This document shows positions 36,684 through 59,842 of a stretch of 64,000 bases of DNA, piece after piece; position 1 is the first letter of the stretch; each line of letters begins with the position of its first letter. Origin of the DNA: Anthoceros angustus (lineage: Eukaryota > Plantae > Anthocerotophyta); the NCBI GenBank assembly GCA_010909165.1, contig MU008155.1:2356001-2420000 (forward strand). The letters are read 5' to 3'. The translations under genes were made by a program, and so were the position numbers. The notes beneath the pieces were generated by a model. It did no database searches and was not told the origin of the DNA. It saw only the letters and a list, made by a program, of their open reading frames with translations.

Positions 36684-38077
36684 ATGGCTAATGATGATGC
36701 TCCCGTTAGCGTTGTACCTTACACATGGGTGGACAGATTCCTAGAATCGGATGCCCACATTGGTTTCTACATTGAAGACGCAAGGAAGCATGAGGATGAG
36801 GCTGGTGACACTCCTTCCTTACCTTGGAACTTCCAAGCTAAAGACCCTTCCGGACCGCTTTCTAAGTATACCTTGCAGCTGGTAGATGTGGTCGATTTGA
36901 TCATGGAAGTCAAGCAAAGAAGACCTCAACCACAGCCTCCCACCATGGCTGATCTAGAAAGGATGATGACAGTGGTGGCGGGCACCACCATCCCTAAGGC
37001 GCAACAAAATAGCGCGAGCAATTTGGGAGTGAAGGCGTCGGATGCGGGCATGGTGATGGAGGAGGTCCGGACCACGAGGTATCACAGTGCATTGGCATTC
37101 TATTCACAAGTCGTATAATGTGTATTTGATGGCACGCTACGTGCCGACTCACGCTCATTGAAGAAGTTCCACGAGTTCATTTGGGGCGATTCGAAAGGAC
37201 ATAGATGCAGATTCGGGACTTGGTGCAAATCAAGTTGTTTTATGTGGCTTCAAGCGTCGAATCGAGTGAAGCTCAACTCAAAGATCCTGCATCCTTAGAG
37301 ACATATCTGATGCAGCAGCGGCCGGATTGGGTGGCCATCACAGTTGGCGAGTAATAGGGTTTGTGAGGATGGAAGTTCAACAAAGCGCAAATTCTTCTCC
37401 GTAGTGCATGCGGAGGCCTTCCACATGGTGTGTATATCGGAGAAGAAGAGATGAAACAAGCTGCCGGATGTGCCAAAAGATGCTCGTAGGAGACCACATA
37501 TGAGGCTTTCGTTTTTGAGAGCAGTCAAGGCCAAATAGGTCAGTCCGGCCAAGTTGTTGAGGTTGAGGGGCACACCATTCTAGCACCAAAACCTACAATT
37601 GTTGGTATAAAAAGAAGCTGGAAAAGCATACGTAAAGGCGATCATAATGGGGTCAGATGATACCAAGGAGCTCAATCATCCCTCACAGTTATTTGGTTGA
37701 GCTTGAGGCTTCACAGTTCCAGTTGGGTAGCTACACACATAGGCCTGAGAAGTGCGCTCGAGGCTGCAGGAAGAAATCCTTGGTTCATCCATCCATCCGG
37801 CTCCGAACCCACAAGAAAGTACTCTAGCGCCTTGAGCTCACAAGAAAGTATTTGAGCGCCTTCAAACTCACGGACCAATACTTTAGTGCCTTCCAACTCA
37901 CGGGATAATAGTCTAGCGCCTTCAAACTCACAGGACCCATACTCTCGCCTTCCAACTTACGAGGATAATACTCTAGCGCCTTCAAACTCATAGAAAAATA
38001 TTCTAGTGCCTTCCAACTCACGGATAATACTCTAGCGCCTTCAAACTCACAGAAAAATATATTTGGCTCCTTCTTAG
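36684..38077 (+). pseudogene. Unknown protein (MANDDAPVSVVPYTW...), frameshifted as assembled, with HAE/CxxC motif and C-terminal decapeptide repeats; copy 1
   Basis: Polypyrimidine tract and ttctag acceptor lie just before the ATG. The frames join when the three copies are compared. Ends in TAG at 38075-38077. Confidence 0.55.
37810..38074 (+). repeat. 30-bp coding-type tandem repeat, about 9 copies (also at ~59572-59833)
   Basis: Unit AATACTCTAGCGCCTTCAAACTCACGGGAT and variants, encoding (N/S)TLAPSNS(Q/R)(D/E/K). Confidence 0.85.
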
Positions 38078-38083
38078 ATCCAT

Positions 38084-38462
38084 TGTTAAATACTCTAACG
38101 CCTTGGACTCACACTAGGGAGTTCAACACGTCATGGCTCACTCACCGGGAGGTCACTATGTGAGAAACTTTGCCGAGCAATTGGAGCAACATAAGTCGCC
38201 AAGGAGTGTGGATCGCATTGGGAGAGGGAAAAGGGCATGAGGATCGGGAGAGAGAAGGGAAGGAAAGAGAGAGGTATGTAGAGAAGATATGGGTGAAAAA
38301 GGATAACATGAGAAAACAATATAAATATGGAAGATGAAGAGAAGGGAAAATGGGAAAATGGGAAGGAGAAACAAAAGAAATGAGAGGATATGGAGAAATA
38401 GTAAAGAATCTTCCTCTTGAGCGAGGAATGTTTTATTGAAAGGCAAAAAAATGGTATATATA
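38084..38462 (-). mobile_element. Ty1/copia LTR, downstream part, interrupted at its TATA box
   Basis: Matches 59843-60220. The minus strand ends ...TTTAACA and contains AATAAA. Confidence 0.7.
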
Positions 38463-39550
38463 TGTGGCGCGACTCGATGGCCGGTAGCGCGCACAATCCG
38501 TGTCGTTGTAGGAAGAGTCCGTTCCCAAGGGAATGGTCGTGCTTATACTGAGCTCTGACCCTATCGCTGAGCGGACTTCATCGAGGTTGGGTCGGCGGCT
38601 CCACAACCCCAAGTGTGTGCCCCTCCACAACTCGTCGGACGGTAGCGCGTGCCGGACCTTCCCACAAACCCACGGTTTCTCGATTACTACGGAGCAGGTT
38701 TGAGCGTTCGCCCGTGATCGTACTCTAGCGCGCTCCTCAACTCTGTCGGCCACAACTCCACCTCAACACACACGCCGTAACGACCCTTCTCCCTTATCCA
38801 TTCCGGCTAGTAGTCACAACACCAACACGCCGATGTATTCACCGGGCCGCCTTTGCCCCTTGCCTTCCGTTACTGCGGAGTAGCTGCGACTACAACCCCT
38901 GACCGTTCAATGACCTCAAGGATGGCTTCCGCCCGAGTCACCCCAAGCGCCTCCTAATCCCCTCCGGGCTTCACGTTCTGCGGAGAAGTGGCTTGACTGC
39001 ATCCCCTGACCTCCGTTCAGTGACCTCCAAGGATGGCTTCCGCCCGAGTCACCCCAAGCGCCTCCTAATCCCCCTCATGCTTCACGTTCTGCGGAGAAGT
39101 AGCTTGACTGCATCCCCCACTGACCTCCGTTCAGCCTCAAGGATGGCTTCCGCCAGTCGCCCCAGCGCCTCCTAATCCCCTCCCGGCGTTACGCGGAGTG
39201 GCCATGACTGCATCCCAGCCTCGTTCAGACCTCCAAGGATGGCTTCCCGCTTAGCGCCTCTAATCCCCTCCGGCACTTCACGTTAACCCATGACTGCATC
39301 CCCACGGCCTCCGTTCAGTGACCTCCAAGGTTAGTCTACACAGAAATCACCCATGAGCACCTCCCGAGCTCAGTCCAGGCCCAGTGCACCCATCAGCGTG
39401 TTGGCGGAGCTCGTCACGAGCTCTAAACACATCCCTCTACCACCAATTAATCACGCGGTGGCGAGGAACTCACTCCGCTCCTCGAGCACGGAAGGCAAAA
39501 CACACGGGCCTTGAAGATGGTACCGAATGATCTGCGTCTTGGGCCAGCCT

Positions 39551-39562
39551 TCCTATATACTC
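39551..39562 (-). promoter_or_regulatory. LTR TATA box (GTATATAGGA), repeated in most LTR copies
   Basis: Plus-strand cttcctatatactccc sits downstream (on the minus strand) of the 27-28-bp U3-like repeats. Confidence 0.6.
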
Positions 39563-40030
39563 CCATACCTAACCTAACCGCCTATGTATGTATCCTAACC
39601 ACATATGTACCCTAACCACAGGTCGTGGTAACCCGGGACAAGCTCATCAACTGCGCGGACTTCTTGCACCAGTGCCCCTTAAGCAGTAGATCCATGCCGG
39701 CGTGCCCACCAAACTAAACCACCGGCGGACCACTCGTCGGACGGGCGGACCACTCCATCGGACCTCTCGAGCGGACCACTCCATCGGACCTCGGCGGACC
39801 ACTCCGTCGGACCTCGCCGGATGACCACTCCGTCGGACCTCGCCGGACGGACCACTCAGGTCGGACCTCTCGGACGGACCACTCAAATCCTCCAGCGGAT
39901 AGGGTCTAGGATTGCACTCTAAGTGCAATCGGAATAGCCTTATTGGCTAACTCCTCCCTATCCCTCTTGCGATGTGACCCAAAAAAGCAAAACAAGCCGC
40001 CAAAATGCGGACATCGGTTGGCACTCCACA

Positions 40031-40044
40031 TACTCCCTTCTCAT
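40031..40044 (-). other. Polypurine tract of the chained LTR element (first instance)
   Basis: Minus-strand ATGAGAAGGGAGTA immediately precedes the LTR start TGTGGAGTGCC. Confidence 0.7.
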
Positions 40045-43000
40045 CTGTTGGCCTCGCCAACACCCGCAATACTCCGCTCTTTCAGTGGACTCTCCCTTCT
40101 CGGCTTTTACTACCTCCTCGGTGTCGGCCAAGTCCTAAGCAACATTGGGAACCTTTTTACCAAGATTCATCCTCCGTTGAGGATGAGTCGCCCTCCTCCT
40201 CAGGGTTGATGTCGTCCTCCCGGTGCCCGTGCCCATCTTCTTTCTCCCTTTGAGCATCTTTGGGCCTCCCGCTAGATTCGCACCCTCGGCGTCCGGTCCT
40301 GCATCCTCCCTACTCAGATACTCCACGCGCCCGACCATTACACCCATCCACAGCACCAATCGCGGCGTCCTACTCCTACCTACTAACTCGAGGTCCACAA
40401 CAATACCATTCCCGAGCAGCGCCAAAATGTGGCGCGACTTTTGATGGCCGGTAGGCGCGCACAATCCGTGTCGTTGTAGGAAGGTCCGTTCCCAAGGGAA
40501 TGGTCTCGTGCTTATTACTGAGCTCTGACTATCGCTGAGCGGACTTCATCGGTTGGGTCGGCGGCTCCACAACCCCAAGTGTGTGCCCTCCACAACTCGT
40601 CGGACGGTAGCGCGTGCCGGACCTTCCCACAAACCCGCGGTTCTCCGGTACTAGGAGCAGGTTTAGCAGCGCGTTCCTTGATCTCGTACTCTAAGCGCCC
40701 AGCGCTCCTCAACTCTGTCGGCCACAACTCCACCTCAACACACACGACGACCCTTCTCCCTTATCCATTCCGGCTAGTAGTCACAACACCAACACGCGAT
40801 GTATTCACAGGCCGCCTTTGCCTTGCTTCCGTTACGGAGTAGCTGCGACTACAACCCCGACCGTTCCGGTGACCTCAAGGATGGCTTCCGCCCGAGTCAC
40901 CCCAAGCGCCTCCTAATCCCCTCCGGTGCTTCACGTTGCGGAGAGTGGCTTCGACTGCATCCCCGACCTCCGTTCAGTGACCTCAAGGATGGCTTCCGAG
41001 TCACCCCAGCGCCTCCTAATCCCCTCATGCTTCACGTTACTGCGGAGAAGTGGCTTGACTGCATCCCCTCCGTTCCGGCCTCAAGGATGGCTTCCGCCCA
41101 GTAGTCACCGCCTCCTAATCCCCTCATGCTTCACGTTGCGGAGAGTGCACTGCCTACGACCTCAGTTCAGACCTCAAGGATGGCTTCCGCCCGGTGTCGC
41201 CCCAGCGCCTCCTAATCCCCTCAGTGCTTCACGTTGCGGAGAGTGGCCCACTGCATCCTGACCTCCGTTCAGCCTCAAGGATGGCTTCCGCCCGAGTCAC
41301 CCCAAGCGCCTCTAATCCCCTCACCTTCACGTTACCTGCATCCCCATCTGACCTCAGTTCAGCCTCCAAGGTTAGTCTGTAGAAATCACCCGCGAGCACC
41401 TCCTGCTCGGTCCAGGCCAGTGCACCCATCAGCGTGTTGGCGGAGCTCGTCACGAGCTCTAAACACATCCCTCTACCACCAATTAATCACACGGTGGCGA
41501 GAACTCACTCACTCCGCTCCTCGAGCACGGAAGGCAAACTGCAGGCCGAAGATGGTACCGGGAATAGTCTGCCGTCTTGGGCGCGGGCCTTCCTATATAC
41601 TCCCATACCTAACCTAACACATGTATGTATCCTAACTGCTATGTATGTACCTAACCACAGGTCGTGGTAAGCAGGGGCTCATCCATGCGGACTTCTTGCA
41701 CCAGTGCCCCTTAAGCAGTAGATCCATGCGGCGATGCCCAAACTAAACCACGGCGAGACCACTCCGTCGGACCTCGGACGGACCTCCGGACCTCGGACGG
41801 ACCACTCCATCGGACCTCGCCGGGCAGACCACTCGTCGGACCTCGCCGGATGACCACTCCGTCGGACCTCGCCGGACGGACCACTCCGTCGGACCCGGAC
41901 GGACCACTCGTCCTCCAGCGGACCAGGTCTAGGGATTGCACTCTAAGTGCAATCGGCGAAATGGCCTTATTGGCTAACTCCTCCCTATCCCTCTTAACGA
42001 TGTGACCAGCAAAACAAGCCAAAATGCGGACATCGGTTGGCACTCCACATACTCCTTCTCATACATTGGCGGCCTCGCCAACACCCAGGCAATACTCCGC
42101 TCTTTCAGTAGGACTCTCCCTTCTCGGCTTTTACTACCTCCTCGGTGTCGGCCAAGTCCGGCAACATTGGAACCTTTTTACCAAGATTCATCCTCAGATT
42201 GAGGATGAGTCGCCTCCTCCTCAGGGTTGATGTCGTCCTCCCGGTAGCGTGCCCATCTTCTTTCTCCCTTTGAGCATCTTTGGGCCTCCGCTAGATTCGC
42301 ACCCTCGGCGTCCGGTCCTGCATCCTCCCTATACTCCCATACTCCTGGCGCTGACCACACCCATCCACAACCCCAATCGCGGCCGTCCTACTCCTACCTA
42401 CTAACTCGGGCAGCGGTCCACAATACCATTCCCGGCAGCGCCAAAATGTGGCGACTTTTGATGGCGGTAGGTAGCGCCAATCCGTGTCGTTGTAGGAAGG
42501 AGTCCGTTCCCAAGGAATGGTCTCGTGCTTTGCTGCCTCTGACTATCGCTGAGCGGACTTCATCGAGTTGGGTCCGGCTCCACAACCCTGGTGTGCCCCT
42601 CCACAACTCGTCGGACCGGTGCCGGACCTTCCACAAACCACGGTTTCTCGATACTAGGAGCAGGTTTAACGCGTTCCTTGTCGATCCTCTCGTACTCTGG
42701 CGCCCAGCGCTCCTCAACTCTGTCCACAACTCCACCTCAACACACACGCGTAACGACCCTTCTCCCTTATCCATTCGGCTAGTAGTCACAACACCAACAC
42801 GCCGATGTATTCACACGGGCCGCCTTTGCCCCGGCTTCACGTTACTGAGATAGCTTTCTGACCTGACCCCGTTCGGTGACCTCCAAGGATGGCTTCCGCC
42901 CAGTCACCCCAGCGCCTCCTAATCCCCTCCGGGCACTTCACGTTCTGAGTCCCACGCTGCATCCCCACCTCGTTCCAGCCTCAAGGATGGCTTCCGCCCA

Positions 43001-46000
43001 GTCACCCCAAGCGCCTCCTAATCCCCTCCCGCTTCACGTTGGAGCCCTGGCTGCATCCCCACCTCCGTTCGGCCTCCAAGGATGGCTTCCGCCCGGTCGC
43101 CCCAGCGCCTCCTAATCCCCTCGGGCCTTCACGTTACTGCGGAGAGTGGCTTCCACTGACCTAGTTCCGGCCTCAGGATGGCTACAGACGGGTCTCGCCT
43201 CCTAATCCCCTCCGGGCCCGTTGCGGAGAAGTGGCTTCTGCATCCCCACCTCCGTTCAGCCTCAGGTTAGTCTCGCACCAGAAATCACCCCGAGCACCTC
43301 CCAGGTGGGTAGCAGTCTGCCAGCGTGTTGGCGGAGCTCGTCACGAGCTCTAAACACATCCCTCTACCACCAATTAATCCACACGGTGGCGAGAACTCAC
43401 TCGCTCCTCGAGCACGGAAGGCAGAGACCTGGCCAGATGGTAGCAGGAATACGCCGTCTTGGGCGCAGCCTTCCTATATACTCCCATACCTAACTAACCC
43501 CGCCTGTATGTATCCTAACCACCTATGTATGTACCTAACCACAGTCGTGGTAACGCGGGCGTAGCTCATCATCGGACTTCTTTTCCTTGCCCATAGCAGA
43601 TCCATGCAGGATACCCACCAAACTAAACCACCCGGCGAGACCACTCAATCGGACTTCGCCGGCGGACCTCGCCGGACCTCGAGCAGACCACTCCGCCGGA
43701 CCTCAGACCACTCAGGCCGGACCTCGCCCGGATGACCACTCCGTCGGACCTCGCCGGACGGACCACTCCGTCGGACCGCCGGACGGACCACTCCGTCCTC
43801 CAGCGGACCGAGGTCTAGGGATTGCACTCTAAGTGCAATCGGCCAATATTATTGGCTAACTCCTCCCTATCCCTCTTAGATGTGACCCAAAAAAAGCAAA
43901 ACAAGCCAAAATGCGGACATGGTTTGGCACTCCATACTCCCTTCTCATACATTGGCGGCCTGCGCCAACACCCAATACTCCGCTCTTTCAGTGGACTCTC
44001 CCTTCTCGACTTTTACTACTTCCTCGGTGTCGGCCAAGTCCGGCAACATTGGAACCTTTTTACCAAGATTCATCCTCAGATTGAGGATGAGTCGCCCTCC
44101 TCCGAGGTTGATGTCGTCCTCCAGCGCCGTGCCCATCTTCTTTCTCCCTTTGAGCATCTTGGGCCTCCCGCTAGATTCGCACCCTCGGCGTCCGGTCCTG
44201 CATCCTCCCTATACTATATACTCCACAAGCTGCGACCATTACACCCATCCACAACGCAATCGGCGTCCTCCCTACCTACTAACTCGGCGGATCCACAACA
44301 ATACCATTCCCGACAGCGCCAAAATGTGCGCGACTTTTCTTGATGGCCGGTAGCGCACAATCCGTGTCGTTGTAGGAAGGTCCGTTCCCAAGGGAATGGT
44401 CTCGTGCTTATACTGAGCTCTGACTATCGCACACGGACTTCATCATCGAGTTGGGTCGGCTCCACAACCCAAGTGTGTGCCCTCCACAACTCGTCGGACG
44501 GTAGCGTGGACCTTCCACAAACCCGCGGTTTCTCGATACTAGGAGCAGGTTTGCGTAGCGTTCCTTGATGATCGTACTCTAAGCGCCCAGCGCTCCTCAA
44601 CTCTGTCCACAACTCCACCTCAACACACGCGTAACACGACCCTTCTCCCTTATCCATTTCCGGCTAGTAGTCACAACACCAACGATGTATTCACACGGGC
44701 CGCCTTTGCTTCCGGGTGCCGTTACGGTAGCTTTGCGGCCTGCAACCCCTGCGTTCAGTGACCTCAAGGATGGCTTCCGTGAGTCACCCCAGCGCCTCCT
44801 AATCCCCTCGGGCTTCCGTTGGAGAAGTGGCTTCGACTGCATCCCCACGGCCTCCGTTCAGCTGACCTCAAGGATGGCTTCCGCCCGTGAGTCACCCCAG
44901 CGCCTCCTAATCCCCTCCCGGGCACTTCACGTTGGAGAAGTGGCTGCCTAATCTGACCTCCGTTCCGGCCTCAGGATGGCTTCCATGAGTCACCCCAGCG
45001 CCTCCTAATCCTCGGGCTTCCGTTGCGGAGGTGGCGACTGCATCCCCACGGCCTCCGTTCCGGCCTCAGGATGGCTTCAGTCGCCCCCAAGCGCCTCTAA
45101 TCCCCTCAGGCTGCTTCACGTTACTGCGGAGAGTGGCTTGCGGCTGCATCCCCACGGCCTCCGTTCAGCCTCAGGATGGCTTCCGTTGGAGAAGTGGCTT
45201 CCATGAGTCACCCCAGCGCCAAAATGCGGACGCCGGTTTGGCACTCCATCAAGCGTGTTGGCGGAGCTCGTCACGAGCTCTAAACACATCCCTCTACCAC
45301 CAATTAATCCTGCGGTGGCGAGAACTCACTCCGCTCCTCGAGCACGGAAGGCAAGCTGCAGGCGAGATGGTACCGAAGCCTGGTCTTGGGCCGAGCCCAC
45401 TATACCGTCCCTGCTCTATGTATCCTAACCCTGTATGTACCTAACCACAGTCGTGGTAACGCGGGCGTAGCTCATCATCGGACTTCTTTTCCTTGCCCAT
45501 AGCAGATCCATGCAGGCGTGCCCAAACTAAACCACGGAGACCACTCAATCGGACTTGCCCGGGGACCTCAGCCGGACCTCTCAGGGCAGACCACTCCGCC
45601 GGACCTCGCCAGACGGACCACTCCGTCGGACCTCGCCCGGATGACCACTCGTCGGACCTCGCCGGACGGACCACTCCGTCGGACCTCGCCGGACGGACCA
45701 CTCCGTCCTCCAGCGGACCGAGGTCTAGGGATTGCCTCTAAGTGCAATCGGCGGCCTTATTGGCTAACTCCTCCCTATCCCTCTTAACGATGCTGACCAA
45801 AAAAAGCAAAACAAGCCCGAGCGGACGCCGGTTTGGCACTCCACATACTCCCCTCATTGGCGGCCTCGCCAACACCCAGGCAATACTCCGCTCTTTCGGA
45901 CTCTCTCCCTTCTCGACTTTTACTACCTCCTCGGGGTGTATGAGTCCGGCAACATTGGGAACCTTTTTACCAAGATTCATCCTCCGTTGAGGATGAGTCG

Positions 46001-49000
46001 CCCTCCTCCTCAGGGTTGATGTCTTAGTCCTCCCGGCGCCCGTGCCCATCTTCTTTCTCCCTTTGAGCATCTTTGGGCCTCACTGGGTCGCACCCTCGGC
46101 GTCCGGTCCTGCATCCTCCCTATACAGCCTGACCATTACACCCATCGGCCGTCCTACTCCTACCTACTTTCGGTGATCCACAATACCATTCCCGACAGCG
46201 CCAAAATGTGCGCGACTTGATGGCCGGTAGGTAGCGCACAATCCGTGTCGTTGTAGGAAGAGTCCGTTCCCAAGGGAATGGTCTCGTGCTTCAATGCACG
46301 AGCTCTACTATCGCTGAGCGGACTTCATCGAGTTGGGTCGGCTCCACAACCCTAAGTGTGTGCCCTCCACAACTCGTCGGACCCGGTAGCGCGACCGGAC
46401 CTTCCACAAACCACGGTTTCTCGATACTAGGAGCAGGTTTAACGGCGCGTTCCTTGCGATCCTACTCTGGCGCCCGGCGCTCCTCAACTCTGTCCGTACC
46501 GCTCCACCTCAACACACGCGTAACGACCCTTCTCCCTTATCCATTTCCGGCTAGTAGTCACAACACCAACACGCCCGATGTATTCACACGGGCCGCCTTT
46601 GCTTCCGGGTACCTTGCGTTACTGCGGAGAAGTGGCTTGCGGCTGCATCCCCACGACCTCCGTTCAGTGACCTCCAAGGATGGCTTCCGAGTCACCCCAG
46701 CGCCTCTAATCCTCCTTGCTTCCGTTGCGGAGGCTTGTGACCTGCATCCCCTGACCTCCGTTCAAAGACCTCAGGATGGCTTCCGAGTCACCCCAAGCGC
46801 CTCCTAATCCCCTCCCGGCTTCACGTTGGAGAAGTGGCTTGCGGCTGCATCCCCACGACCGTTCGGCCTCAGGATGGCTTCCATGGTGGCCCAGCGCCTC
46901 TAATCCCCTCGGGCCTTCACGTTGCGGAGAAGTGGCCAGGCCCTCTCCACGACCTCCGTTCAGCGGCCTCAAGGATGGCCAGTCGCCCCCGCCTCCTAAT
47001 CCCCTCGGGCCTTCCGTTGGAGAAGTGGCTTCATGACTGCATCCCCACGACCTCCGTTCAGCCTCCAGTTAGTCTCGCACCAGAAATCACCCACCTCACA
47101 GGCTCAGTCAGCCCGGTCTGCACCCATCAGCGTGTTGGCGGGCTCGTCACGAGCTCTAAACACATCCCTCTACCACCAATTAATCCTGCGGTGGCGAGAA
47201 CTCACTCCGCTCCTCGAGCACGGAAGCGAAACGGGCCTTGAAGATGGTACGGGAATAGTCACCGTCTTGGGCCTCCTTCTACTCCCATACCTAACTAACC
47301 CGCCTATGTATCCTAACCACCTATGTATGTACCTAACCACAGGTAGTAATGTGCAGGACCTCAGGATGGCTTCCGCCGGACCACTCAATCGGACTTCTTG
47401 CACCAGGTACTTCCGTCAGACCATGCGGGCGATGCCCACCGCTAACCACGCCGGACCACTCAATCGGACTTGCGGGCAGACCACTCGTCGGACCTCGCGG
47501 GCAGACCACTCCGACCTCGCCCGGGCGGACCACTCAGGCCGGACCTCGCCGGATGACTCCGTCGGACCTGCCGGACGGACCACTCCGTCGGACCGCCGGA
47601 CCACTCGTCCTCAGCAGGCCCAGGTCTAAAGTACCTTTAAAATAAGTGCCGATTGGCTAACTCCTCCCTATCCCTCTTGATGTGACCAAAAGCAAAACAA
47701 GCCAAAATGCGGACATGGTTGGCACTCCACATACTCCCTTCTCATACATTGGCGGCCTCGCCCGAACAATACTCCGCTCTTTCAGTGGACTCTCCCTTCT
47801 CGACTTTTACTACCTCCTCGGTGTCGTAAGTCCGGCAACATTGGGAACCTTTTTACCAAGATTCATCCTCCGTTGAGGATGAGTCGCCCTCCTCCTCAGG
47901 GTTGATGTCGTCCTCCCAGTGCCCATCTTCTTTCTCCCTTTGAGCATCTTTGGGCCTCCCGCTAGATTCGCACCCTCGGCGTCCGGTCCTATGCATCCTC
48001 CCTATATACTCCACAAGCGCCCCGGCCATTACACCCATCCACAGCATGATCGGCCGTCCTACTCCTACCTACTAACTCGTGATCCACAACAATACCATTC
48101 CCGCAGCGCCAAAATGTGCGCGACTTTTCTTGATGGCGGTAGCGCGCACAATCCGTGTCGTTGTAGGAAGGAGTCCGTTCCCAAGGAATGGTCGTGCTTA
48201 TTGCACGAGCTCTGACCTATCGCTGAGCGGACTTCATCGGGTTGGGTCGGCTCCACAACCCAAGTGTGTGCCCTCCACAACTCGTCGGACGGTAGCGCGA
48301 CCGGACCTTCCACAAACCACTTGGTTTCTCCGGTACTAAGAGCAGGTTTAACGCGTTCCGATCGATCTCGTACTCTAAGCGGCTCCTCAACTCTGTCCCC
48401 GCAACTCCACCTCAACACACCTGCAGCGTAACCGACCCTTCTCCCTTATCCATTCCGGCTAGTAGTCACAACACCAACACGCCGATGTATTCACACCGGG
48501 CCGCCTTTGCCCCTTCAGCTTCACGTTGCGGAGTAGCTGCGACTGCATCCCCACGACCTCCGTTCAGGCCTCAGGATGGCCAGAGTCACCCCAAGCGCCT
48601 CCTAATCCCCTCAGGCTTCACGTTGCGGAGAAGTGGCTTCATGACACCATCCCCACGACCTCCGTTCAATGACCTCAAGGATGGCTTCCATAGAGTCACC
48701 CCAGCGCCTCCTAATCCCCTCCTTCACGTTACTGCAGTGGCTTCGCACTGCATCCCCGACCTCGTTCAGTGACCTCAAGGATGGCTTCCAGTCGCCCCAG
48801 CCTCCTAATCCCCTCCGGGCACTTCACGTTGCGGAGAAGTGGCTTCGCACTGCATCCCCGACCTCCGTTCAGCCTCAGGATGGCTTCCGTCGCCCCAGCG
48901 CCTCCTAATCCCCTCAGCTTCACGTTGCGGAGAAGTGGCTTGACTGCATCCCCTCAGTTCGGACCTCAAGGTTAGTCTACGAGAAATCACCCGCGAGCAC

Positions 49001-50041
49001 CTCCACGATCACGCACCCATCAGCGTGTTGGCGGAGCTCGTCACGAGCTCTAAACACATCCCTCTACCACCAATTAATCACACGGTGGCGAGAACTCACT
49101 CGCTCCTCGAGCACGGAAGGCAAACACCGCAGGCCTTGAAGATGGTACCGGAATAGTCTTGGGCGCGGGCCTTCCTATATACTCCCATACCTAACCTAAC
49201 CCGCCTATGTATGTATCCTAACCACTATGTATGTACCTAACCACAGGTCGTGTGTAACGGGCGTAGCTCATCACTGCCGGACTTCTTGCCATTGCTTCCC
49301 ATGCAGTAGATCCATGCAGGCGATGCCCGCAAACTAAACCACCCGGCGAGACCACTCGTCGGACCTTGCAGACGGACCACTCGCCGGACCTCTCAGGCGG
49401 ACCACTCCCCATCGGACCTCGCCGGGGCCAGACCACTCCGTCGGACCTCGCCGGACCACTCGTCCGGACCTCGCCGGACGGACCACTCCGTCGGACCTCG
49501 CCGGACGGACCACTCCGTCCTCCAGCGGACGGTCTAGGGATTGCACTCTAAGTGCAATCGGCCAATAGCCTTATTGGCTAACTCCTCCCTATCCCTCTTA
49601 ACGATGTGACCCAAAAAAGCAAAACAAGCCGCCAAAATGCGGACATCGGTTTGGCACTCCATACTCCTTCTCATACATTGGCGGCCTCGCCAACACCCAA
49701 TACTCCGCTCTTTCAGTCGGACTCTCCCTTCTCGGCTTTTACTACCTCCTCGGTGTCGGCAAGTCCGGCAACATTGGGAACCTTTTTACCAAGATTCATC
49801 CTCAGATTGAGGATGAGTCGCCCTCCTCCTCCGAGGTTGATGTCAGTCCTCCAGCGCCGTGCCATCTTCTTTCTCCCTTTGAGCATCTTTGGGCCTCCCG
49901 CTAGATTCGCACCCTCGGCGTCCAGGTCCTGTGCATCCTCCCTATACATATACTCCACAAGCTGCGACCATTACACCCATCCACAAGCATGATCGGCGTC
50001 CTACTCCTACCTACTAACTCGGCGGATCCACAACAATACCA

Positions 50042-50059
50042 TTCCCGGCAGCGGCGCCA
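50042..50059 (-). other. Primer-binding site, best-preserved copy; tRNA-Asp-like
   Basis: Minus-strand TGGCGCCGCTGCCGGGAA lies 3 nt after the LTR end. It matches the recalled plant tRNA-Asp 3' end at 16/18. Other copies read TGGCGCTG(C/T)CGGGAA. Confidence 0.6.
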
Positions 50060-53000
50060 AAATGTGGCGCGACTTTTCTTGATGGCGGTAGCGCGCACAA
50101 TCCGTGTCGTTGTAGGAAGGAGTCCGTTCCCAAGGAATGGTCTCGTGCTTAATGCACTGAGCTCTGACCTATCGCTGAGCGGACTTCATCGGGTTGGGTC
50201 GGCTCCACAACCCCAAGTGTGTGCCCCTCCACAACTCGTCGGACGGTAGCGCGACCGGACCTTCCACAAACCCGCGGTTTCTCCGATCTAGGAGCAGGTT
50301 TAGCGGCCGCGTTCCATCGATCTCGTACTCTAGCGCCCGGCGCTCCTCAACTCTGTCCGGCCACAACTCCACCTCAACACACCGTAACACGACCCTTCTC
50401 CCTTATCCATTCCGGCTAGTAGTCACAACACCAACACGCCGATGTATTCACCGGGCCGCCTTTGCCTTCCGTTCTGCGGAGTAGCTGCGACTGCAACCCC
50501 ACGACCTCCGTTCAATGACCTCCAAGGATGGCTTCCGAGTCACCCCAAGCGCCTCCTAATCCCCTCAGCTTCCGTTTGCGGAGAAGTGGCTTCCTGACAC
50601 ATCCCCACCTCCGTTCAGCCTCGGCCTCAAGGATGGCTTCCGCCCAGTCGCTAGCGCCTCCTAATCCCCTCCGGGCCCGTTCGGATGGCTTGACTGCATC
50701 CCCACCTCGTTCAGGCCTCAAGGATGGCTTCCGTTCAGCCTCGATGGCTTCCGAGTCACCCCAGCGCCTCTAATCCCCTCAGGCTTCCGTTCAGCCTCGA
50801 TGGCTTCCCGTGCTAGCGCCTCCTAATCCTCCGGGCCTTCACGTTGGAGAAGTGGCCCCTGCATCCCCACCTCCGTTCAGGCCTCAAGGTTAGTCTCGCA
50901 CAGAAATCTGACCTATCGCTGAGCGGACTTCTCATCGAGTTGGGTCGGCTCCACAACCCCAAGTGTGTGCCCCTCCACAACTCGTCGGACGGTAGCGTGG
51001 ACCTTCCACAAACCCGCGGTTTCTCCGATCTAGGAGCAGGTTTAGCGGCCGCGTTCCATCGATCTCGTACTCTAGCGCCCGGCGCTCCTCAACTCTGTCG
51101 GCCACAACTCCACCTCAACACACCGTAACACGACCCTTCTCCCTTATCCATTCCGGCTAGTAGTCACAACACCAACACGCCGATGTATTCACACGGGCCG
51201 CCTTTGCCCCTTGTGCTTCCGTTACTGCGGAGTAGCTGCGACTGCAACCCCGGCCCGTTCAGTGACCTCAAGGATGGCTTCCGCCCGAGTCACCCCAAGC
51301 GCCTCCTAATCCCCTCGGGCACTTCACGTTGGAGAAGTGGCCCTGCATCCCCGACCTCCGTTCCGGTGACCTCAAGGATGGCTTCCGCCCGTGAGTCACC
51401 CCAGCGCCTCCTAATCCCCTCAGCTTCACGTTGGAGAAGTGGCTGCATCCCCGACCTCCGTTCAGGCCTCAAGGATGGCTTCCACAGAGTCGCCCCAGCG
51501 CCTCTAATCCCCTCCCTTCGTTCGAGCCGACTGCATCCCCGACCTCCGTTCAGGCCTCAAGGATGGCTTAGCTCGCGCCTCCTAATCCCCTCAGGCTTCC
51601 GTTGCGGAGAAGTGGCTTGACTGCATCCCCGACCTCCGTTCAGTGACCTCAAGGTTAGTCTACAGAAATCACCCATGAGCACCTCGAGCTCGAGTCCGAC
51701 CCAGTGCACCCATCAAGCGTGTTGGCGGAGCTCGTCACGAGCTCTAAACACATCCCTCTACCACCAATTAATCACGCGGTGGCGGGAACTCACTCGCTCC
51801 TCGAGCAGGCGAAACTTGCAGGCCTTGAAGATGGTACAGGATAATCGTCTTGGGCCGAGGCCTTCCTATATACTCCCATACCTAACCTAACCCGCCTATG
51901 TATGTATCCTAACCACACTATGTACCTAACCACAGGTCGTAGTAGCATGGGCAGCTCATCAACGCGGACTTCTTGCACCCCTTCCACGCCAAGCAGTAGA
52001 TCCATGCAGGCGTGCCCAAACTAAACCACCCGGCGAGACCACTCGTCGGACCTCGCCGGACGGACCACTCAATCGGACCTCGCCGGGCGGACCACTCCAT
52101 CGGACCTCGCCGGGCGGACCACTCCGTCGGACCTCGCCCGGATGACCACTCAATCGGACCTCGCCGGACGGACCACTCGTCGGACCTCGCCGGACCACTC
52201 CGTCGGACCTCCGCGGGCCAGTCTAGGATTGCACTCTAAGTGCAATCGGCCAATAGCCTTATTGGCTAACTCCTCCCTATCCCTCTTAGATGTGACCCAA
52301 AAAAAGCAAAACAAGGCGAGTACGGACGCCAGTTTGGCACTCCACATACTCCCCTTCTCATCTGTTGGCGGCCTCGCCAACACCCCAGGCAATACTCCGC
52401 TCTTTCCGTCGGACTCTCCCCTTCTCATCTTTTACTACCTCCTCAGGTGTCAGCAAGTCCGGCAACATTGGGAACCTTTTTTTACCAAGATTCATCCTCC
52501 GTTGAGGATGAGTCGCCCTCCTCCTCCGAGGTTGATGTGCCGTCCTCCCCAGCGCCCGTGCCCATCTTCTTTCTCCCTTTGAGCATGCTGGGCCTCCCGC
52601 TAGATTCGCACCCTCGTCAGGTCTGCATCCTCCCTATATACTCCACAAGCGACCATTACACCCATCCACCGCAATGGCGGCCGTCCTACTCCTACCTACT
52701 AACTCAGGCGGTCCACAACAATACCATTCCCGGCAGCGCCAAAATGTGGCGCGACTTCTTGATGGCCGGTAGGCGCGCACAATCCGTGTCGTTGTAGGAA
52801 GAGTCCGTTCCCAAGGGAATGGTCTCGTGCTTAATGCACTGAGCTCTGACTCGCTGAGCGGACTTCATCGAGGTTGGGTCCGTGGCTCCACAACCTAAGT
52901 GTGTGCCCCTCCACAACTCGTCGGACGGTAGCGCGCCGGACCTTCCACAAACCACGGTTCTCCGGTACTACGGAGCAGGTTTAGCAGCGCGTTCCCGTCG

Positions 53001-56000
53001 ATCTCGTACTCTAGCGCCCGGCGCTCCTCAACTCTGTCGGCCACAACTCCACCTCAACACACACGCGTAACCGACCCTTCTCCCTTATCCATTCCGGCTA
53101 GTAGTCACAACACCAACACGCGATGTATTCACACGGGCCGCCTTTGCCGCTTCACGTTGCGGAGAAGTGGCTTCACTGCATCCCCGACCTCCGTTCGGCC
53201 TCAAGGATGGCTTCCGCCCGGTCAGCGCCTAATCCTCGGTGCTTCACGTTGCGGAGAAGTGGCCGCGGCTGCATCCCCAGCCTCGTTCAGTGACCTCAAG
53301 GATGGCTTCCGCCCTGAGTCACCCCAGCGCCTCCTAATCCCCCGGCTTCGCCACGGAGAAGTGGCTTCACTGCATCCCCGACCTCCGTTCCACCTCAAGG
53401 ATGGCTTCCGAGTCACCCCAGCGCCTCTAATCCCCTCAGGGCCTTCACGTTGGAGAAGTGGCTTCATGACTGCATCCCCACCTCCGTTCCGGCCTCCAAG
53501 GATGGCTTCCGCCCAGTGCCGCGCCTCCTAATCCCCTCAAGCTTCACGTTGCGGAGAAGTGGCTTCACTGCATCCACATCTGACCTCCGTTCCGGCCTCA
53601 AGGATGGCTTCCATGATGTCGCTAGCGCCTCTAATCCCCTCCACTTCACGTTGCGGAGTCATGACTGCATCCCCGACCTCCGTTCAGCCTCAAGGTTAGT
53701 CTACTTTTAGAAATCACCCATGAGCACCTCACGAGCTCGAGTCCGACCCAGTGCACCCATCAAGCGTGTTGGCGGAGCTCGTCACGAGCTCTAAACACAT
53801 CCCTCTACCACCAATTAATCCTGCGGTGGCGGGAACTCACTCGCTCCTCGAGCACGGAAGGCAAAACACCACAGGCCGAAGATGGTACGAGATAGTGCGT
53901 CTTGGGCCGGGCCTTCCTATATACTCCCATACCTAACCTAACCCGCCTATGTATGTATCCTAACCACACTATGTATGTACCCTAACTAACCACAGGTGTG
54001 GCCGGGACGTAGCTCATCAACTGCGCGGACTTCTTGCAGTTGCTTCCCCCAGCAGTAGATCCATGCCGAGCGTGCCACCAAACTAAACCACCGGCGAGAC
54101 CACTCCATCGGACTTGGGACGGACCACTCCGTCGGACCTCTCGGCAGACCACTCCATCGGACCTCGCCGGGCAGACCACTCCGTCGGACCTCGCCCGGAT
54201 GACCACTCGTCGGACCTCGCCGGACGGACCACTCGTCGGACCTCGCCGGACCACTCCGTCCTCCAGCGGATAGGGTCTAGGGATTGCACTCTAAGTGCAA
54301 TCGGCGAAATGGCCTTATTGGCTAACTCCTCCCTATCCCTCTTATGATGTGACCCAAAAAAGCAAAACAAGCCGCCAGAGTCGGACGCCAGTTTGGCACT
54401 CCACATACTCCCTTCTCATACATTGGCGGCCCTGCAACACCCCAGGCAATACTCGCTCTTTCCGTGGACTCTCCCTTCGGCTTTTACTACCTCCTCGGTG
54501 TCGGCCAAGTCCGGCAACATTGGGAACCTTTTTACCAAAGATTCATCCTCCGTTGAGGATGAGTCGCCCTCCTCCTCAGGGTTGATGTGCCTCCTCCCAG
54601 TGCCCATCTTCTTTCTCCCTTTGAGCATCTTTGGGCCTCCCGCTAGATTCGCACCCTCGGCGTCCGGTCCTGCATCCTCCCTATACATATACTCCTGGCG
54701 CGACCATTACACCCATCCACAGCACTTGCGGCGGCCGTCCTACTCCTACCTACTAACTCAGCGGTCCAACAATACCATTCCCAGGCGCCAAAATGTGGCG
54801 CGACTTTCTTTGATGGCCGGTAGGCGCGCACAATCCGTGTCGTTGTAGGAAGGAGTTCCCGAGGAATGGTCTCGTGCTTATTGCACGAGCTCTGACTATC
54901 GCTGAGCGGACTTCATCGAGGTTGGGTCGTGGCTCCACAACCCTAAGTGTGTGCCCCTCCCTCGTCGGACCTCGCCGGACCTCGCCGGACCTTCCACAAA
55001 CCACCGGATTTCTCGTACTGGAGAGGTTTAACGGCGCGTTCCGCGTCGATCTCGTACTCTAAGCGCCGCTCCTCAACTCTGTCGGCCACAACTCCACCTC
55101 AACACACGCAGTAACACGACCCTTCTCCCATCCATTTGACTAGTAGTCACAACACCAACACGCGATGTATTCACGGGCCGCCTTTTATGCTTCCGTTCTG
55201 CGGAGTAGCGACTGCAACCCTGACCCGTTCCGGCCTCAAGGATGGCTTCCGAGGTCACCCCAGCGCCTCCTAATCCCCTCAGCTTCACGTTCTGCGGAGA
55301 AGGAACCCGCTCCCCCGACCTCCGTTCCGGCCTCAAGGATGGCTTCAGTCCGCCTCCTAATCCTCAGGGCCTTCACGTTCTGCGGAGAAGTGGCTTGACT
55401 GCATCCCCACCTCCGTTCCGCCTCCAAGGATGGCTTCCATGATGGCCCAGCGCCTCTAATCCTCAGGGCCTTCACGTTCTGCGGAGAAGTGGCTTGACTG
55501 CATCCCCACCTCCGTTCCGGCCTCAAGGATGGCTTCATGACCCAGCGCCCCAGCGCCTCCTAATCCTCAGGGCCTTCACGTTCTGCGGAGAAGTGGCTTG
55601 ACTGCATCCGACCTCCGTTCCAGTGACCTCAAGGTTAGTCTACTTTTAGAAATCACTTGAGCACCTCGAGCTCGAGTCAGCCCGATGCACCCATCAGCGT
55701 GTTGGCGGGCTGGTCGCGAGCTCTAAACACATCCCTCTACCACCAATTAATCACTGCGGTGGCGGGAACTCACTCCGCTCCTCGAGCACAGGCAAAACAC
55801 CACAGGCGCGAAGATGGTACGGAATATGCGTCTTGGGCGCGAGCCTTCCTATACTCCCATACCTAACCTAACCGCCTATGTATGTATCCTAACCACACTG
55901 TATGTACCCTAACCTGGTCGTAATCACGGCGTAGCTCATCAACCGGCAGGACTTCTTGCACCACCCTTAAGCAGTAGATCCATGCCGCGTGCCACCAAAC

Positions 56001-56341
56001 TAAACCACCGGCGAGACCACTCGTCGGACCTCGCCGGACGGACCACTCCGTCGGACCTCGCCCGGACGGACCACTCCGTCGGACCTCGCCCGGACGGACC
56101 ACTCCGTCGGACCTCGCCCGGACGGACCACTCCGTCGGACCTCGCCGGACGGACCACTCCGTCGGACCTCGCCCGGACGGACCACTCCGTCCTCCAACGG
56201 ACCGAGGGTCTAGGGATTGCACTGTAAGTGCAATCTGGCCGGAAATGGCCTTATTGGCTAACTCCTCCCTATCCCTCTTAGATGTGACCCAAAAAAGCAA
56301 AACAAACAGCCAAATCGGACCGGTTGGCACTCCACAATATA

Positions 56342-56534
56342 CACGGCCGAGTGAGTTATGGCATCGAGTTGAGAATGCGAAACTTACTCAACTATATCAA
56401 ATGCTATTAAACATTGTTTCGTCTTACCTTGGAACTTCCAAGCTAAAGACCCTTCCGGACCGCTTTCTAAGTATACCTTGAACGTGCCTAAACCTCACTT
56501 TGATCAGCCGTCTAAGACCCCCATCTCCACAACA
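56342..56534 (-). mobile_element. Ty1/copia LTR, upstream part, with adjacent PPT
   Basis: Minus-strand AGGGGAG|TGTTGTGGAG (PPT 56535-56541). Matches 60221-60373. Confidence 0.7.
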
Positions 56535-56829
56535 CTCCCCTGTTCGATCCGAGTTCTTCGTTCTCGCCGCCATGGCGTCCATCGTGCATGCTTCTCTCGT
56601 GTTCCTCGGCATCCTCTCGACCATCTGGTGGCTTCTCAAGCTCGCGACTCACACGATCTCATGAGCCAAAATTGAAAGCCTCGAGCTGGAGTAGCGAGCC
56701 ACAGATCGAAAAGAGCGCGGTGTTCAACGCAAGAGCCGCTTGCGGTCGGCCCAAGATGCATGGCGGGCGTAAGTATAGAAAGGTTTAGAATTGCGAACTC
56801 CAACCTTTGCCTCCGGATGGCGGTGAGAA

Positions 56830-57700
56830 GAGCTTATGAAGAGTGGTGATCAAGGTGTCGGCAGTCAACGTCTTCCCTCAAGGTTGGCCAGGGAGCTCGA
56901 GCTCCATCACCCGGATAAGCTTCCTTGCTCGGTGGTCCTATACCTCTTACATGCTTCTCGTGGAGTACCTTGGGTGCCTTGGTGGCAGTCGATTTGTTAT
57001 CGCCAAGATCGACATCATGGCTTAAGCTCGCAACCACATGGGATGAAATGGTGTTGTATCTCCACATGTTTGGTCCTTGTGTGCGGTTGGGTTGTAGGTC
57101 ATGGCAATTGCATCGATGAGTGCATAGTAGTTTGGTTGGTTGATCCTGCTCCTCCGGATGTCGCCAGAATTGTCGAATCCAAGGAATCTCCTTTGCCGCT
57201 AGGAAGTTCTTTGCATACTCCGCCGGTGGAGGGCACAGCGCAAGCAATTGCATCCCGGAGACTAACCCGTTGTTGAGGATCATGCGATGGTCAGTAGACT
57301 TGCGTGCATCCGGATCTCACCGGATGCATTTGAGTAGGAGGTTAACTAGTACAAGCTTCTTTGGAAGTGGTGTTTTGTATACAAGTCCAAGGGATTTGCA
57401 GCCCTTCAAGTAGCGGAGGATGCGCTTGACGCTAGTCGGCTCTCCCATGGTTGGAGAGGTATCTTGATGCAATATTCACACCGTGACATGTCCGGCCCGG
57501 TCCACATTGCCAAATAGAGTAGGCTAGCCGCCAGCCTCATTGAGGGGCACTTGGGACATCTCATGAGCTTTTTACGGGTGGGGTCATCGGATAGCTTCTC
57601 GCCGGAAGCAATAGGAGTGGACGGGCTTGGCATCGCTTCAATCTCTCTCCGGGTCGACGCGGTGTCACACGGATGAACAGGCCGCAGAATTATGCATGAC
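56830..57700 (-). pseudogene. Ty1/copia pol remnant (RT C-terminus + RNase H), copy 1
   Basis: SLLYLAMW..PD; KRILRYL; AEY...AAKEI.WIRQ; EQDQPTKLLC; AIAMTYNP.AH..TKHVEIQ.HFI; KVLHEKHVRGIG. Many indels. Confidence 0.85.
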
Positions 57701-59836: not shown

Positions 59837-59842
59837 ATCCAT

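Follow-up and report, generated by a model that had tools for sequence, protein, structure and literature searches.

A nine-LTR chain of a non-coding retroelement within a single target-site duplication in Anthoceros angustus

In Anthoceros angustus, a retroelement forms a continuous chain of nine LTRs and eight internal parts that occupies a single insertion site. The window, by which we mean the whole stretch of 64,000 nucleotides that was analyzed (GenBank assembly GCA_010909165.1, contig MU008155.1, forward-strand positions 2,356,001 to 2,420,000), contains the chain at positions 38463-56336. Read directly from the sequence as assembled, these 17,874 bp have the layout LTR-(internal-LTR)x8. 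The element has TG..CA ends and PBS-like and PPT motifs and is rightly described as a non-autonomous, non-coding LTR retroelement. The chain most likely grew by unequal recombination between its LTRs.

Insertion site and host repeat

The outer ends of the chain, TGTGG at 38463-38467 and CCACA at 56332-56336, are evident by direct reading. Each is flanked by a copy of ATATA, a 5-bp TSD within the 4-6 bp expected for LTR retrotransposons, and this single TSD encloses the whole 17.9-kb chain. A self-BLAST comparison shows that the host DNA around the chain is a tandem repeat with a unit of ∼4.8 kb. The features of the insertion site are:

36122-38462, no strand: left part of host repeat copy 1, which aligns with 57922-60220 and 62715-64000
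38458-38462, no strand: left TSD copy, 5 bp, ATATA (direct reading)
56337-56341, no strand: right TSD copy, 5 bp, ATATA (direct reading)
56337-57921, no strand: right part of host repeat copy 1, which aligns with copy 2 from 60221 onward
60211-60225, no strand: empty paralogous target site in the next host-repeat copy, uninterrupted (direct reading and self-BLAST)

Because 36122-38462 pairs with 57922-60220 and the sequence past 56336 pairs with that past 60220, the 17,874 bp break host repeat copy 1 exactly where the next copy is uninterrupted. The empty site reads GGTATATATACACGG and has a single copy of ATATA. The net gain at the insertion point relative to this paralog is 5 bp, an exact TSD length that depends on a faithful paralog because the target is a brief run of (TA)n. 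The two outer junctions are clean, in agreement with the host paralog. Within the chain we found no host sequence and no additional TSD; all of the internal junctions consist of element sequence only.

An earlier note on this DNA had described a 17.9-kb chain of nine LTRs within one 5-bp TSD, beginning with TGTGG, ending with CCACA and flanked by ATATA on each side, with an empty site visible at 60211-60225. Direct reading of the ends and flanks and the location of nine LTR right ends bear this description out, and for the empty site direct reading agrees with the self-BLAST of the host-repeat copies.

Organization of the chain

The borders between LTRs and internal parts were placed by motif searches and alignments, and the comparisons among them are pairwise or column counts. 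The LTR right ends lie at 40030, 42049, 43936, 45845, 47731, 49663, 52346, 54405 and 56336. The parts of the chain are:

38463-40030, minus strand: LTR1, 1568 bp; TGTGG start on the plus strand, the chain's 3' LTR end in element orientation
40031-40427, minus strand: internal part 1, 397 bp; on the plus strand the PPT is at the left and the PBS-like motif at the right, both being minus-strand motifs
40428-42049, minus strand: LTR2, 1622 bp (motif searches, alignment)
42050-42446, minus strand: internal part 2, 397 bp (alignment, junction motifs)
42447-43936, minus strand: LTR3, 1490 bp (motif search, alignment)
43937-44324, minus strand: internal part 3, 388 bp (alignment, junction motifs)
44325-45845, minus strand: LTR4, 1521 bp (motif search, alignment)
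45846-46206, minus strand: internal part 4, 361 bp, the shortest (alignment, junction motifs)
46207-47731, minus strand: LTR5, 1525 bp, the most deviant unit (motif search, alignments)
47732-48114, minus strand: internal part 5, 383 bp (alignment, junction motifs)
48115-49663, minus strand: LTR6, 1549 bp (motif search, alignment)
49664-50062, minus strand: internal part 6, 399 bp; its PBS-like tract, TGGCGCCGCTGCC at 50047-50059 (minus), is the longest of the eight
50063-52346, minus strand: LTR7, composite, 2284 bp (alignments)
52347-52744, minus strand: internal part 7, 398 bp (alignment, junction motifs)
52745-54405, minus strand: LTR8, 1661 bp (motif searches, alignment)
54406-54793, minus strand: internal part 8, 388 bp (alignment, junction motifs)
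54794-56336, minus strand: LTR9, 1543 bp; CCACA end on the plus strand, the chain's 5' LTR end in element orientation

Apart from the composite LTR7 (2284 bp), the LTRs are 1490-1661 bp in length. The eight internal parts are mutually homologous and measure 361-399 bp. The array has a period of ∼1.95 kb, its last partial period is one LTR, and the LTR accounts for ∼80% of each unit. The inner LTR ends are the same as the outer ones, except that TGTGG is short of one G in LTR4, LTR5 and LTR6 and that CCACA has a C-to-T change in LTR3 and LTR6.

In LTR7, 50063-50906 corresponds to LTR positions 1 to ∼844, and from 50907 the sequence restarts at position ∼92 and continues to the LTR end. The chain has ten LTR heads, with that of the tenth located within LTR7. 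The two LTR7 heads share only 84% identity, which is no more than they share with other LTRs, and a recent internal duplication is therefore unsupported as the source of the composite. A deletion may have fused two LTRs here, which cannot be proven at this level of noise. The LTRs also differ in their sub-repeats. A ∼100-bp sub-repeat is present in 1.8 to 5.6 copies, varying among LTRs, and the 28-bp sub-repeats of LTR9 (56015-56191) are 97% uniform, whereas the 27-28-bp sub-repeats elsewhere are 69-86% uniform, or 90% in the two-copy remnant of LTR3. The structural reading given in the earlier note holds, but it had overlooked that the element is on the minus strand, that LTR7 is composite and that identity among units is low.

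Orientation and junction motifs

The element lies on the minus strand, where PBS-like and PPT motifs are found at all eight junctions, that is, at every unit border. Each minus-strand junction has the form CACA-TTT-TGGCGC… (PBS-like) on one side of the internal part and …ATGAGAAGGGAGTA-TGTGG (PPT) on the other. In a motif search, CACATTTTGGCGC occurs in eight exact copies, compared with zero expected by chance. The PPT, ATGAGAAGGGAG, is usually followed by TA (lost in internal parts 3 and 6) and adjoins TGTGG at eight of eight junctions with small variations; likewise, TGG stands 3 nt past the LTR end at every minus-strand junction. In LTR retrotransposons, a PBS opens with TGG at 0-5 nt beyond the 5' LTR and is complementary to the 3' end of a tRNA. 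The plus-strand orientation was ruled out, as it has no TGG near an LTR end and no purine tract ahead of the next LTR.

The 3-nt spacer between the LTR and the PBS-like tract is AT-rich (TTT). In ATHILA elements, a non-chromovirus lineage of Ty3/gypsy, an AT-rich 3-nt spacer likewise separates the LTR from a PBS that reads TGGCGCCGTTGCC (bioRxiv 10.64898/2026.03.20.713144). The copy at 50047-50059, one of eight, matches this published PBS at 12 of 13 positions, and the other seven copies are 1-3 nt shorter. A match to the ATHILA string with two mismatches somewhere in the window is within chance, so that the weight of the comparison comes from position only. Judged by its sequence, the PBS-like tract resembles the tRNA-Asp/Asn type of Athila-lineage Ty3/gypsy elements, and because of this resemblance the autonomous partner may have been Athila-like. 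The likeness to ATHILA extends to the order of LTR end, AT-rich 3-nt spacer and a PBS-like tract starting TGGCGCC..., and to the long LTRs. The termini are different, however, with TGTGG/CCACA here and a TATCA terminus in Brassicaceae, and the chain has no coding domains by which to place its lineage. No tRNA genes were found in the window.

These features bear on whether the chain is a retroelement structure at all. If it were merely a satellite or a segmental tandem duplication with a chance resemblance to a retroelement, the regular ∼1.95-kb period with internal sub-repeats would be accounted for, and the host DNA around the chain is also tandemly repeated. However, the limits of the array fall exactly on LTR ends with TG..CA, the terminal partial period is one LTR, PBS-like and PPT motifs recur at every junction, and the array has a 5-bp TSD and an empty site. 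A pile of nested insertions of one element would have left host DNA, an internal TSD or a split LTR between units, and there is none. We regard both of these explanations as scarcely credible.

Coding capacity and element class

The chain lacks coding capacity. It has twelve ORFs of at least 130 aa, and none of the ten that we tested reached the Pfam cut-off; one showed a weak match to DUF4381 (E 0.005) that is below this cut-off. The positions of the ORFs vary from unit to unit and are not conserved. A search of 36000-64000 with Rfam gave no family at the gathering score and hence no Cassandra-like RNA genes in the LTR. Within the window we found neither further copies of the family nor an autonomous partner. 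The exact products of the PPR ORF and of an ORF in LTR9 have no record in public assemblies, a result that is uninformative for independent confirmation. The PPR ORF, which lies nearby, is intact at 1046 aa, indicating that the neighboring unique sequence is accurate.

By extrapolation from the units, a single element would be ∼3.5 kb in length, with LTRs of ∼1.55 kb and an internal part of ∼0.4 kb. TRIMs and LARDs have no gag or pol, consist only of LTRs plus a PBS and a PPT, and are mobilized in trans. The element in the chain is like them in having only LTRs and PBS-like and PPT motifs. TRIMs have short LTRs and are limited to less than 1-1.5 kb for the whole element, and LARDs exceed 4 kb and have a long non-coding internal region. 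With an LTR that alone is ∼1.55 kb, the element lies outside the strict TRIM definition; at ∼3.5 kb overall and ∼0.4 kb inside, it also lies outside that of LARDs, and it reverses the proportion of LTR to internal part that is typical of a LARD. The measured lengths and the lack of a Pfam match above the cut-off thus agree with the earlier description of ∼1.55-kb LTRs with ∼0.4 kb inside and no gag/pol, and with its view that the element is neither a typical TRIM nor a LARD, since ∼3.5 kb falls between the two size limits. The chain itself corresponds to a tandem LTR-RT or TA copy: LTRs and internal parts alternate, an LTR stands at both ends, and neighbors share one LTR, with one irregular LTR (LTR7).

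Divergence among units

As assembled, the LTRs are 76-88% identical to one another in pairwise comparisons and the internal parts 79-97%. For pairs of units, raw identity has a ceiling of about 88-90%. No pair is near-identical, and there is consequently no sign of recent stepwise duplication. The differences have an unusual composition. The LTR alignment contains 321 small indel blocks, with indels of 1-3 bp, and the private substitutions comprise 41 transitions versus 58 transversions, many of them C<->G. CpG is not depleted, with an observed/expected ratio of 0.93 in the chain versus 0.67 over the window's first 36 kb. Clean LTR columns are 5-14% diverged, as against 1.6-2.8% for the host paralogs. 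The host paralogs must predate the insertion and yet differ less, which in situ growth does not explain unless assembly error accounts for much of the difference.

Much of the difference among units therefore looks technical, or at least not clock-like. Because it is rich in indels, has transversions at least as numerous as transitions, is undepleted in CpG and is greater than that of the older host paralogs, the age of the chain cannot be read from LTR divergence, and we dropped dating by this means as unsafe. The duplication history is likewise unreadable, because the variants shared among units in 523 clean columns are few (23, compared with 51 private) and clustered. Relatedness among units is star-like with no robust sub-groups; sub-types suggested by a first alignment (internal parts 1, 5 and 8 versus 3, 6 and 7) were lost in a stricter, junction-spanning alignment. 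A polishing gradient from the array edges was also considered as proof of noise. The outcome was unclear: private differences occur in clumps and form no gradient, and many are in LTR9.

The number of units, and perhaps the chain itself, could be an over-expansion of one element or of a much shorter chain by a long-read assembler or gap filler. The technical appearance of the differences just described (indel blocks, transversions and retained CpG alike) is in keeping with this, as is the fact that LTR9, near the right edge, is alone in having 27-28-bp sub-repeats with 97% uniformity. However, over-expanded copies should share one consensus, whereas LTR length, sub-repeat count and LTR7 differ here, and a chain reported by even one noisy read across the array would be physically real. 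Moreover, the nearby unique sequence with its intact PPR ORF is accurate, and the clean outer junctions match the paralog. We consider it unlikely that the unit number, or the chain itself, is an assembly product.

Origin of the chain

The earlier note had proposed two possible origins, a concatemer integrated in one event or in situ expansion by unequal LTR recombination, and the same pair is debated in published work (PMC11899658, PMC7215508, PMC5932611). The sequence itself shows the single insertion site, the layout of the chain, the motifs at its junctions and the lack of coding capacity; the mechanism of growth, the partner lineage and the timing are inferred, as follows. The non-autonomous element would have integrated once, on the minus strand, into one copy of the ∼4.8-kb host repeat and duplicated the 5-bp ATATA, with gag and pol supplied by an Athila-like autonomous partner. 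Unequal homologous recombination between the long LTRs, through sister-chromatid or homologue exchange, would then have lengthened the single element, each exchange adding one internal-plus-LTR unit, up to nine LTRs and eight internal parts. Later out-of-register events would have changed how many ∼100-bp and ∼27-bp sub-repeats the LTRs contain, and a deletion or internal duplication may have produced the composite LTR7. With LTRs making up ∼80% of the unit, the target for unequal exchange is large. Shared-LTR tandems are generally attributed to inter-LTR recombination (PMC5932611), and a TSD kept in tandem copies has been read as a sign of intra-element recombination (PMC13570524). We give this account as a whole, one integration into the host repeat, mobilized by an Athila-like partner and followed by unequal recombination between LTRs, about an even chance of being correct.

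The other origin is a ready-made multimer that integrated in one event, with all units arriving at once and small rearrangements following later. Such a multimer might have arisen as a multi-LTR cDNA through repeated switching of templates inside the particle, or have been copied from the read-through transcript of a 1-LTR circle or of a pre-existing array. Both routes are treated as open for other elements (PMC11899658, PMC7215508). The single TSD for 17.9 kb and the compact unit of 1.95 kb are consistent with this origin, and the star-like relatedness, in which neighbors are never near-identical and sub-groups are not robust, fits a one-step concatemer equally well. If the source was an older array, the multimer would have been heterogeneous on arrival, which would explain a divergence above that of the host paralogs. 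On the other hand, strand transfer would have many opportunities to shorten an 18-kb RNA or cDNA with nine R regions, we see no direct sign here of multimeric transcripts or circles, and the star-like pattern may be mere sequence noise. The composite LTR7 and the variable sub-repeat counts indicate that DNA-level rearrangement acts on the array under any origin. We consider integration of a multimer somewhat unlikely, and growth by unequal LTR recombination remains our preferred reading.

Relation to known tandem LTR elements

Single-TSD tandems are common in plants (PMC11899658), and the kind of structure described here is thus already known. According to the IDENTAM study of rice, Arabidopsis, almond and cotton, tandem LTR-RT structures of this type are common, and Athila is over-represented among them in three of these species (PMC11899658). 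Retrotransposon protein domains are conserved in all 28 curated rice tandems, and three LTRs are present at each of the two loci for which details are given (PMC11899658). The A. angustus chain resembles the IDENTAM tandems in its alternating LTRs and internal parts with LTRs at the ends, its one 5-bp TSD, the empty site in a comparison sequence and the same two candidate origins, and the enrichment of Athila there has a counterpart in the Athila-like PBS-like tract here. Unlike them, it is non-coding, has 9-10 LTRs and resides in a non-seed land plant, and its LTR identity as assembled is 76-88% compared with mostly >95%.

Closer in element type are the non-autonomous LTR elements of sugar beet, which form a size continuum with many families of 1.5-4 kb and with some in which long LTRs enclose a short internal region (PMC13570524). 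Ninety-seven tandem copies of 3 to 21 LTRs were reported, most with only 3 LTRs, and the TSD is kept in 73 of the 97; in the authors' view, the chains arose by unequal recombination within elements and mark a step on the way to satellite-like repeats (PMC13570524). Our element shares with these families the lack of coding sequence, the PPT, the multi-LTR chain and a size within the unnamed 1.5-4 kb class, and has a PBS-like tract where they have a PBS, but it belongs to another plant lineage and an unrelated family. Given these long-LTR families and 3-21-LTR chains, the earlier note's view of the large-LTR form as unfamiliar is unsupported. In arrays of the TRIM Cassandra, an LTR unit and an internal-domain spacer are repeated up to 12 times and the units are reported to be almost identical (PMC7215508). 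The use of the LTR as unit and the internal part as spacer, the non-autonomous nature and the two mechanisms proposed are the same as here. The LTRs of Cassandra, however, are very short and contain 5S RNA sequences with a pol III promoter, whereas those of the chain are ∼1.55 kb with no Rfam match, and the units of the chain are not almost identical, as assembled.

Implications

The locus is unusually clean, as the two junctions, the one TSD and the empty site all lie within the window, and it could be used to test how LTR elements become tandem arrays, particularly if the number of units at this site varies among accessions. It carries observations published for angiosperms over to a land plant without seeds, and to an element that has no coding sequence and is 80% LTR in each unit. 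Inside tandem arrays of the assembly, individual bases may be unreliable, which would make LTR-divergence dating of such chains untrustworthy without reads. A broader idea, which we think unlikely, is that the genome tends to turn several unrelated LTR families into shared-LTR 'retro-satellites', at least partly through integration of multimers derived, for instance, from 1-LTR circles or read-through transcripts. The chain would then be one such single-event insertion of a ready-made multimer, and the locus would directly show a retroelement giving birth to a satellite in a land plant of an early-diverging lineage.

A single integration in a tandem host repeat

The chain of LTRs lies in host DNA that self-comparison of the window resolves into a ∼4.8-kb unit repeated in tandem at least three times. 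Direct reading of the sequence places the ends of the chain, the flanking target-site duplication (TSD) and an uninterrupted copy of the target as listed.

Features of the insertion site (forward-strand coordinates; host copies from self-comparison)
36122-38462 and 56337-57921: host copy 1, the copy with the insertion
38458-38462: ATATA, left of the chain
38463-56336: the chain, LTR-(internal-LTR)x8, element orientation minus strand; begins TGTGG at 38463, ends CCACA at 56336
56337-56341: ATATA, right of the chain
57922-62714: host copy 2
60211-60225: GGTATATATACACGG, uninterrupted site in host copy 2
62715-64000 (window end): host copy 3

The left flank of the chain matches 57922-60220 and the right flank matches 60221 onward. 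Therefore, 17,874 bp have split host copy 1 while copy 2 is intact, and a net five bases were gained, a TSD length to be read with the caveat that the target, a short (TA)n run, can change length by itself. The chain thus occupies the site of a single integration, and copy 2 is an empty-site control equal to the best obtainable within a single window. The TGTGG and CCACA ends, the ATATA flanks and the empty site had all been claimed in an earlier note, and their coordinates hold on direct reading.

Divergence of the host repeat is patchy, with AT-rich parts nearly identical and GC-rich parts (e.g. 37022-37800) carrying 8-18 mismatches per 100 nt. The host unit contains internal tandem repeats of 106-114 bp and 30 bp, and four of its ORFs have no Pfam match. 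Host copy 2 has extra stretches of 342 and 543 bp relative to the right part of copy 1, and a ∼570-bp direct repeat (61926-62492 versus 62478-63034, 96.8% identity) lies at the border of copies 2 and 3. The last 600 nt left of the chain are nearly the same as the paralog; the first ∼100 nt to its right (56337-56440 versus 60221-60330) show several 1-4-nt gaps that could reflect either local sequence quality or real change.

Anatomy of the chain

Probed with the first 2.6 kb of the array, the copies lie head to tail and recur every 1.88-2.05 kb, apart from one interval of 2.68 kb. Motif searches placed nine LTR right ends with their corresponding left ends, delimiting nine LTRs of 1490-1661 bp (except LTR7, counted from the left, at 2284 bp) and, between them, eight internal parts that each measure 361-399 bp, which bears out the earlier claim of a nine-LTR, eight-internal chain. 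The last period of the array is exactly one LTR, as predicted by LTR elements sharing LTRs and not by a plain satellite. Throughout the chain, the plus strand is rich in C (GC skew about -0.2 to -0.27).

Rearrangement at the DNA level followed integration. LTR7 (50063-52346) runs from LTR position 1 to ∼844 and then restarts at ∼92; its two heads are 84% identical and resemble each other no more than they resemble other LTRs. Either a ∼1.2-kb deletion fused adjacent LTRs, in which case the chain formerly comprised ten LTRs separated by nine internal parts, or LTR7 contains an old internal duplication. Each LTR also carries a ∼100-bp and a ∼27-bp sub-repeat array, whose copy numbers vary among LTRs (1.8 to 5.6 copies for the ∼100-bp array). 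LTR length, sub-repeat number and the composite LTR7 go beyond base-calling noise and mark the units as distinct copies. That the assembly over-expanded a shorter array is improbable, given LTRs that differ structurally from one another and junctions that are clean.

Orientation, junction motifs and coding capacity

Each of the eight junctions, read on the minus strand, has …CACA, TTT, TGGCGC…, with a primer-binding-site-like (PBS) motif behind the LTR end, and all eight carry …ATGAGAAGGGAG(TA), a polypurine tract, adjoining TGTGG. The sequence CACATTTTGGCGC has eight exact matches versus none expected by chance. The plus-strand orientation was rejected, having no TGG near the LTR end and C-rich sequence before the next LTR. 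A satellite unrelated to retroelements, or a series of nested insertions, is contradicted by the chain ends, the TSD and these junction motifs, as well as by the absence of host DNA and internal TSDs from the chain, and we consider either highly improbable.

The longest PBS copy, TGGCGCCGCTGCC (50047-50059, minus strand), has one mismatch in 13 positions with the ATHILA PBS TGGCGCCGTTGCC, a match that is within chance window-wide and takes its weight solely from its position at the junction; the remaining seven of the eight copies are shorter by 1-3 nt. In ATHILA elements, as in the chain, the PBS lies behind an AT-rich spacer, there of 3-6 nt, and it has been assigned to tRNA-Asp/Asn (bioRxiv 10.64898/2026.03.20.713144); it is the non-chromovirus lineages of Ty3/gypsy that use tRNA-Asp (PMC6317226). 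Together, the positional match and this primer usage point tentatively to an Athila-like autonomous partner. Six of nine LTRs have a TATATA motif that may mark the promoter; in minus orientation it lies ∼450-480 nt from the LTR start, on the downstream side of the 27-bp repeats.

The chain has no coding capacity. Its 12 ORFs of at least 130 aa vary in position within the unit; a Pfam scan of 10 of the 12 gave no match at gathering score, and one chain ORF has a weak, sub-gathering match to DUF4381. No Rfam family was found in 36000-64000, which excludes a Cassandra-type 5S LTR, and the window contains neither tRNA genes nor further copies of the element family.

Elsewhere in the window, ORFs of 401, 445 and 718 aa (26604-28872 and 30342-32498, plus strand) have no Pfam match and may be accessory genes of transposons or else specific to the lineage; the first two lie inside GC-rich sequence at 27-29 kb (GC 0.61-0.63) and the 718-aa ORF in sequence of ordinary GC. 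A 260-aa ORF (11355-12137, plus strand) matches part of a glycosyltransferase family 2 domain (E 2.5e-11) and is probably a single exon of a larger gene.

Divergence among units

As assembled, the LTRs are 76-88% and the internal parts 79-97% identical; columns without nearby gaps give differences of 5-14% among LTRs and 0-9% among internal parts. Host paralogs differ by 1.6-2.8%. The insertion is necessarily younger than the host duplication, or last conversion, that gave the empty site, yet judged by these divergences it appears older.

Several features suggest that something other than ordinary mutational decay underlies the unit differences. The LTR alignment contains 321 small indel blocks (≤3 bp), and private substitutions comprise 41 transitions versus 58 transversions (C<->G, 23/99). 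The chain keeps its CpG (observed/expected 0.93), unlike the first 36 kb of the window (0.67) and a strongly depleted nearby gene (0.47); the chain is either young or unmethylated, or its sequence is unreliable. Uniformity of the 27-28-bp sub-repeats is 97% in LTR9, near the right edge, and 69-86% in other LTRs (90% in the two-copy remnant of LTR3). That nearby gene, an intron-free PPR ORF with an E motif (21837-24977, plus strand), is intact over 1046 aa, indicating that unique sequence in the assembly is accurate. A large share of the differences can reasonably be put down to poor consensus or polishing inside repeats, though this is not proven: private differences are clumped, with no gradient from the array edges, and many small indels are common to two to four units. 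Few substitutions are shared, and these are clustered (23 shared versus 51 private in 523 clean columns); neither duplication history nor unit sub-types can be read from them, and the unit differences yield no age for the chain.

Formation of the chain

We infer the route from one insertion to nine LTRs from three described routes: unequal homologous recombination, across sister chromatids or homologues, between LTRs belonging to one element, which is taken to be the general route (PMC5932611, PMC13570524); template switching in the particle, yielding concatenated cDNA (PMC7215508); and read-through transcription of 1-LTR circles (PMC11899658). We favour the first, with about even confidence: after a single integration, the chain would have grown in situ by unequal recombination between LTRs. 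We do so because 80% of the unit is LTR, the array rearranges and this route is the best documented. One-step integration of a ready-made multimer is a weaker candidate, though a real one; it fits the star-like relatedness of the units, and would fit the apparent excess of age if a heterogeneous multimer came from an older array.

Relation to known elements

Tandem LTR retrotransposon structures with a single TSD are reported to be common in rice, Arabidopsis, almond and cotton and to be polymorphic there, with an enrichment of Athila in three of the four (PMC11899658). Arrays of Cassandra TRIMs reach 12 repeats (PMC7215508), and in sugar beet 97 tandem copies carry between 3 and 21 LTRs, 73 of these copies keeping the TSD (PMC13570524). 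The earlier note held that the element fits neither TRIM nor LARD and is an unrecognised form. On size the claim stands, as the element falls outside the strict definitions of both; its novelty does not. Non-autonomous LTR elements of sugar beet vary continuously in size and include members in the 1.5-4 kb range, for which there is no name, and families with long LTRs and short internal parts are frequent (PMC13570524). The size gap is a known artefact of terminology, and the chain thus belongs to an already known kind. What is somewhat unusual is the number of LTRs, nine to ten, for an element whose LTRs are 1.5 kb long, and its occurrence in a non-seed land plant.
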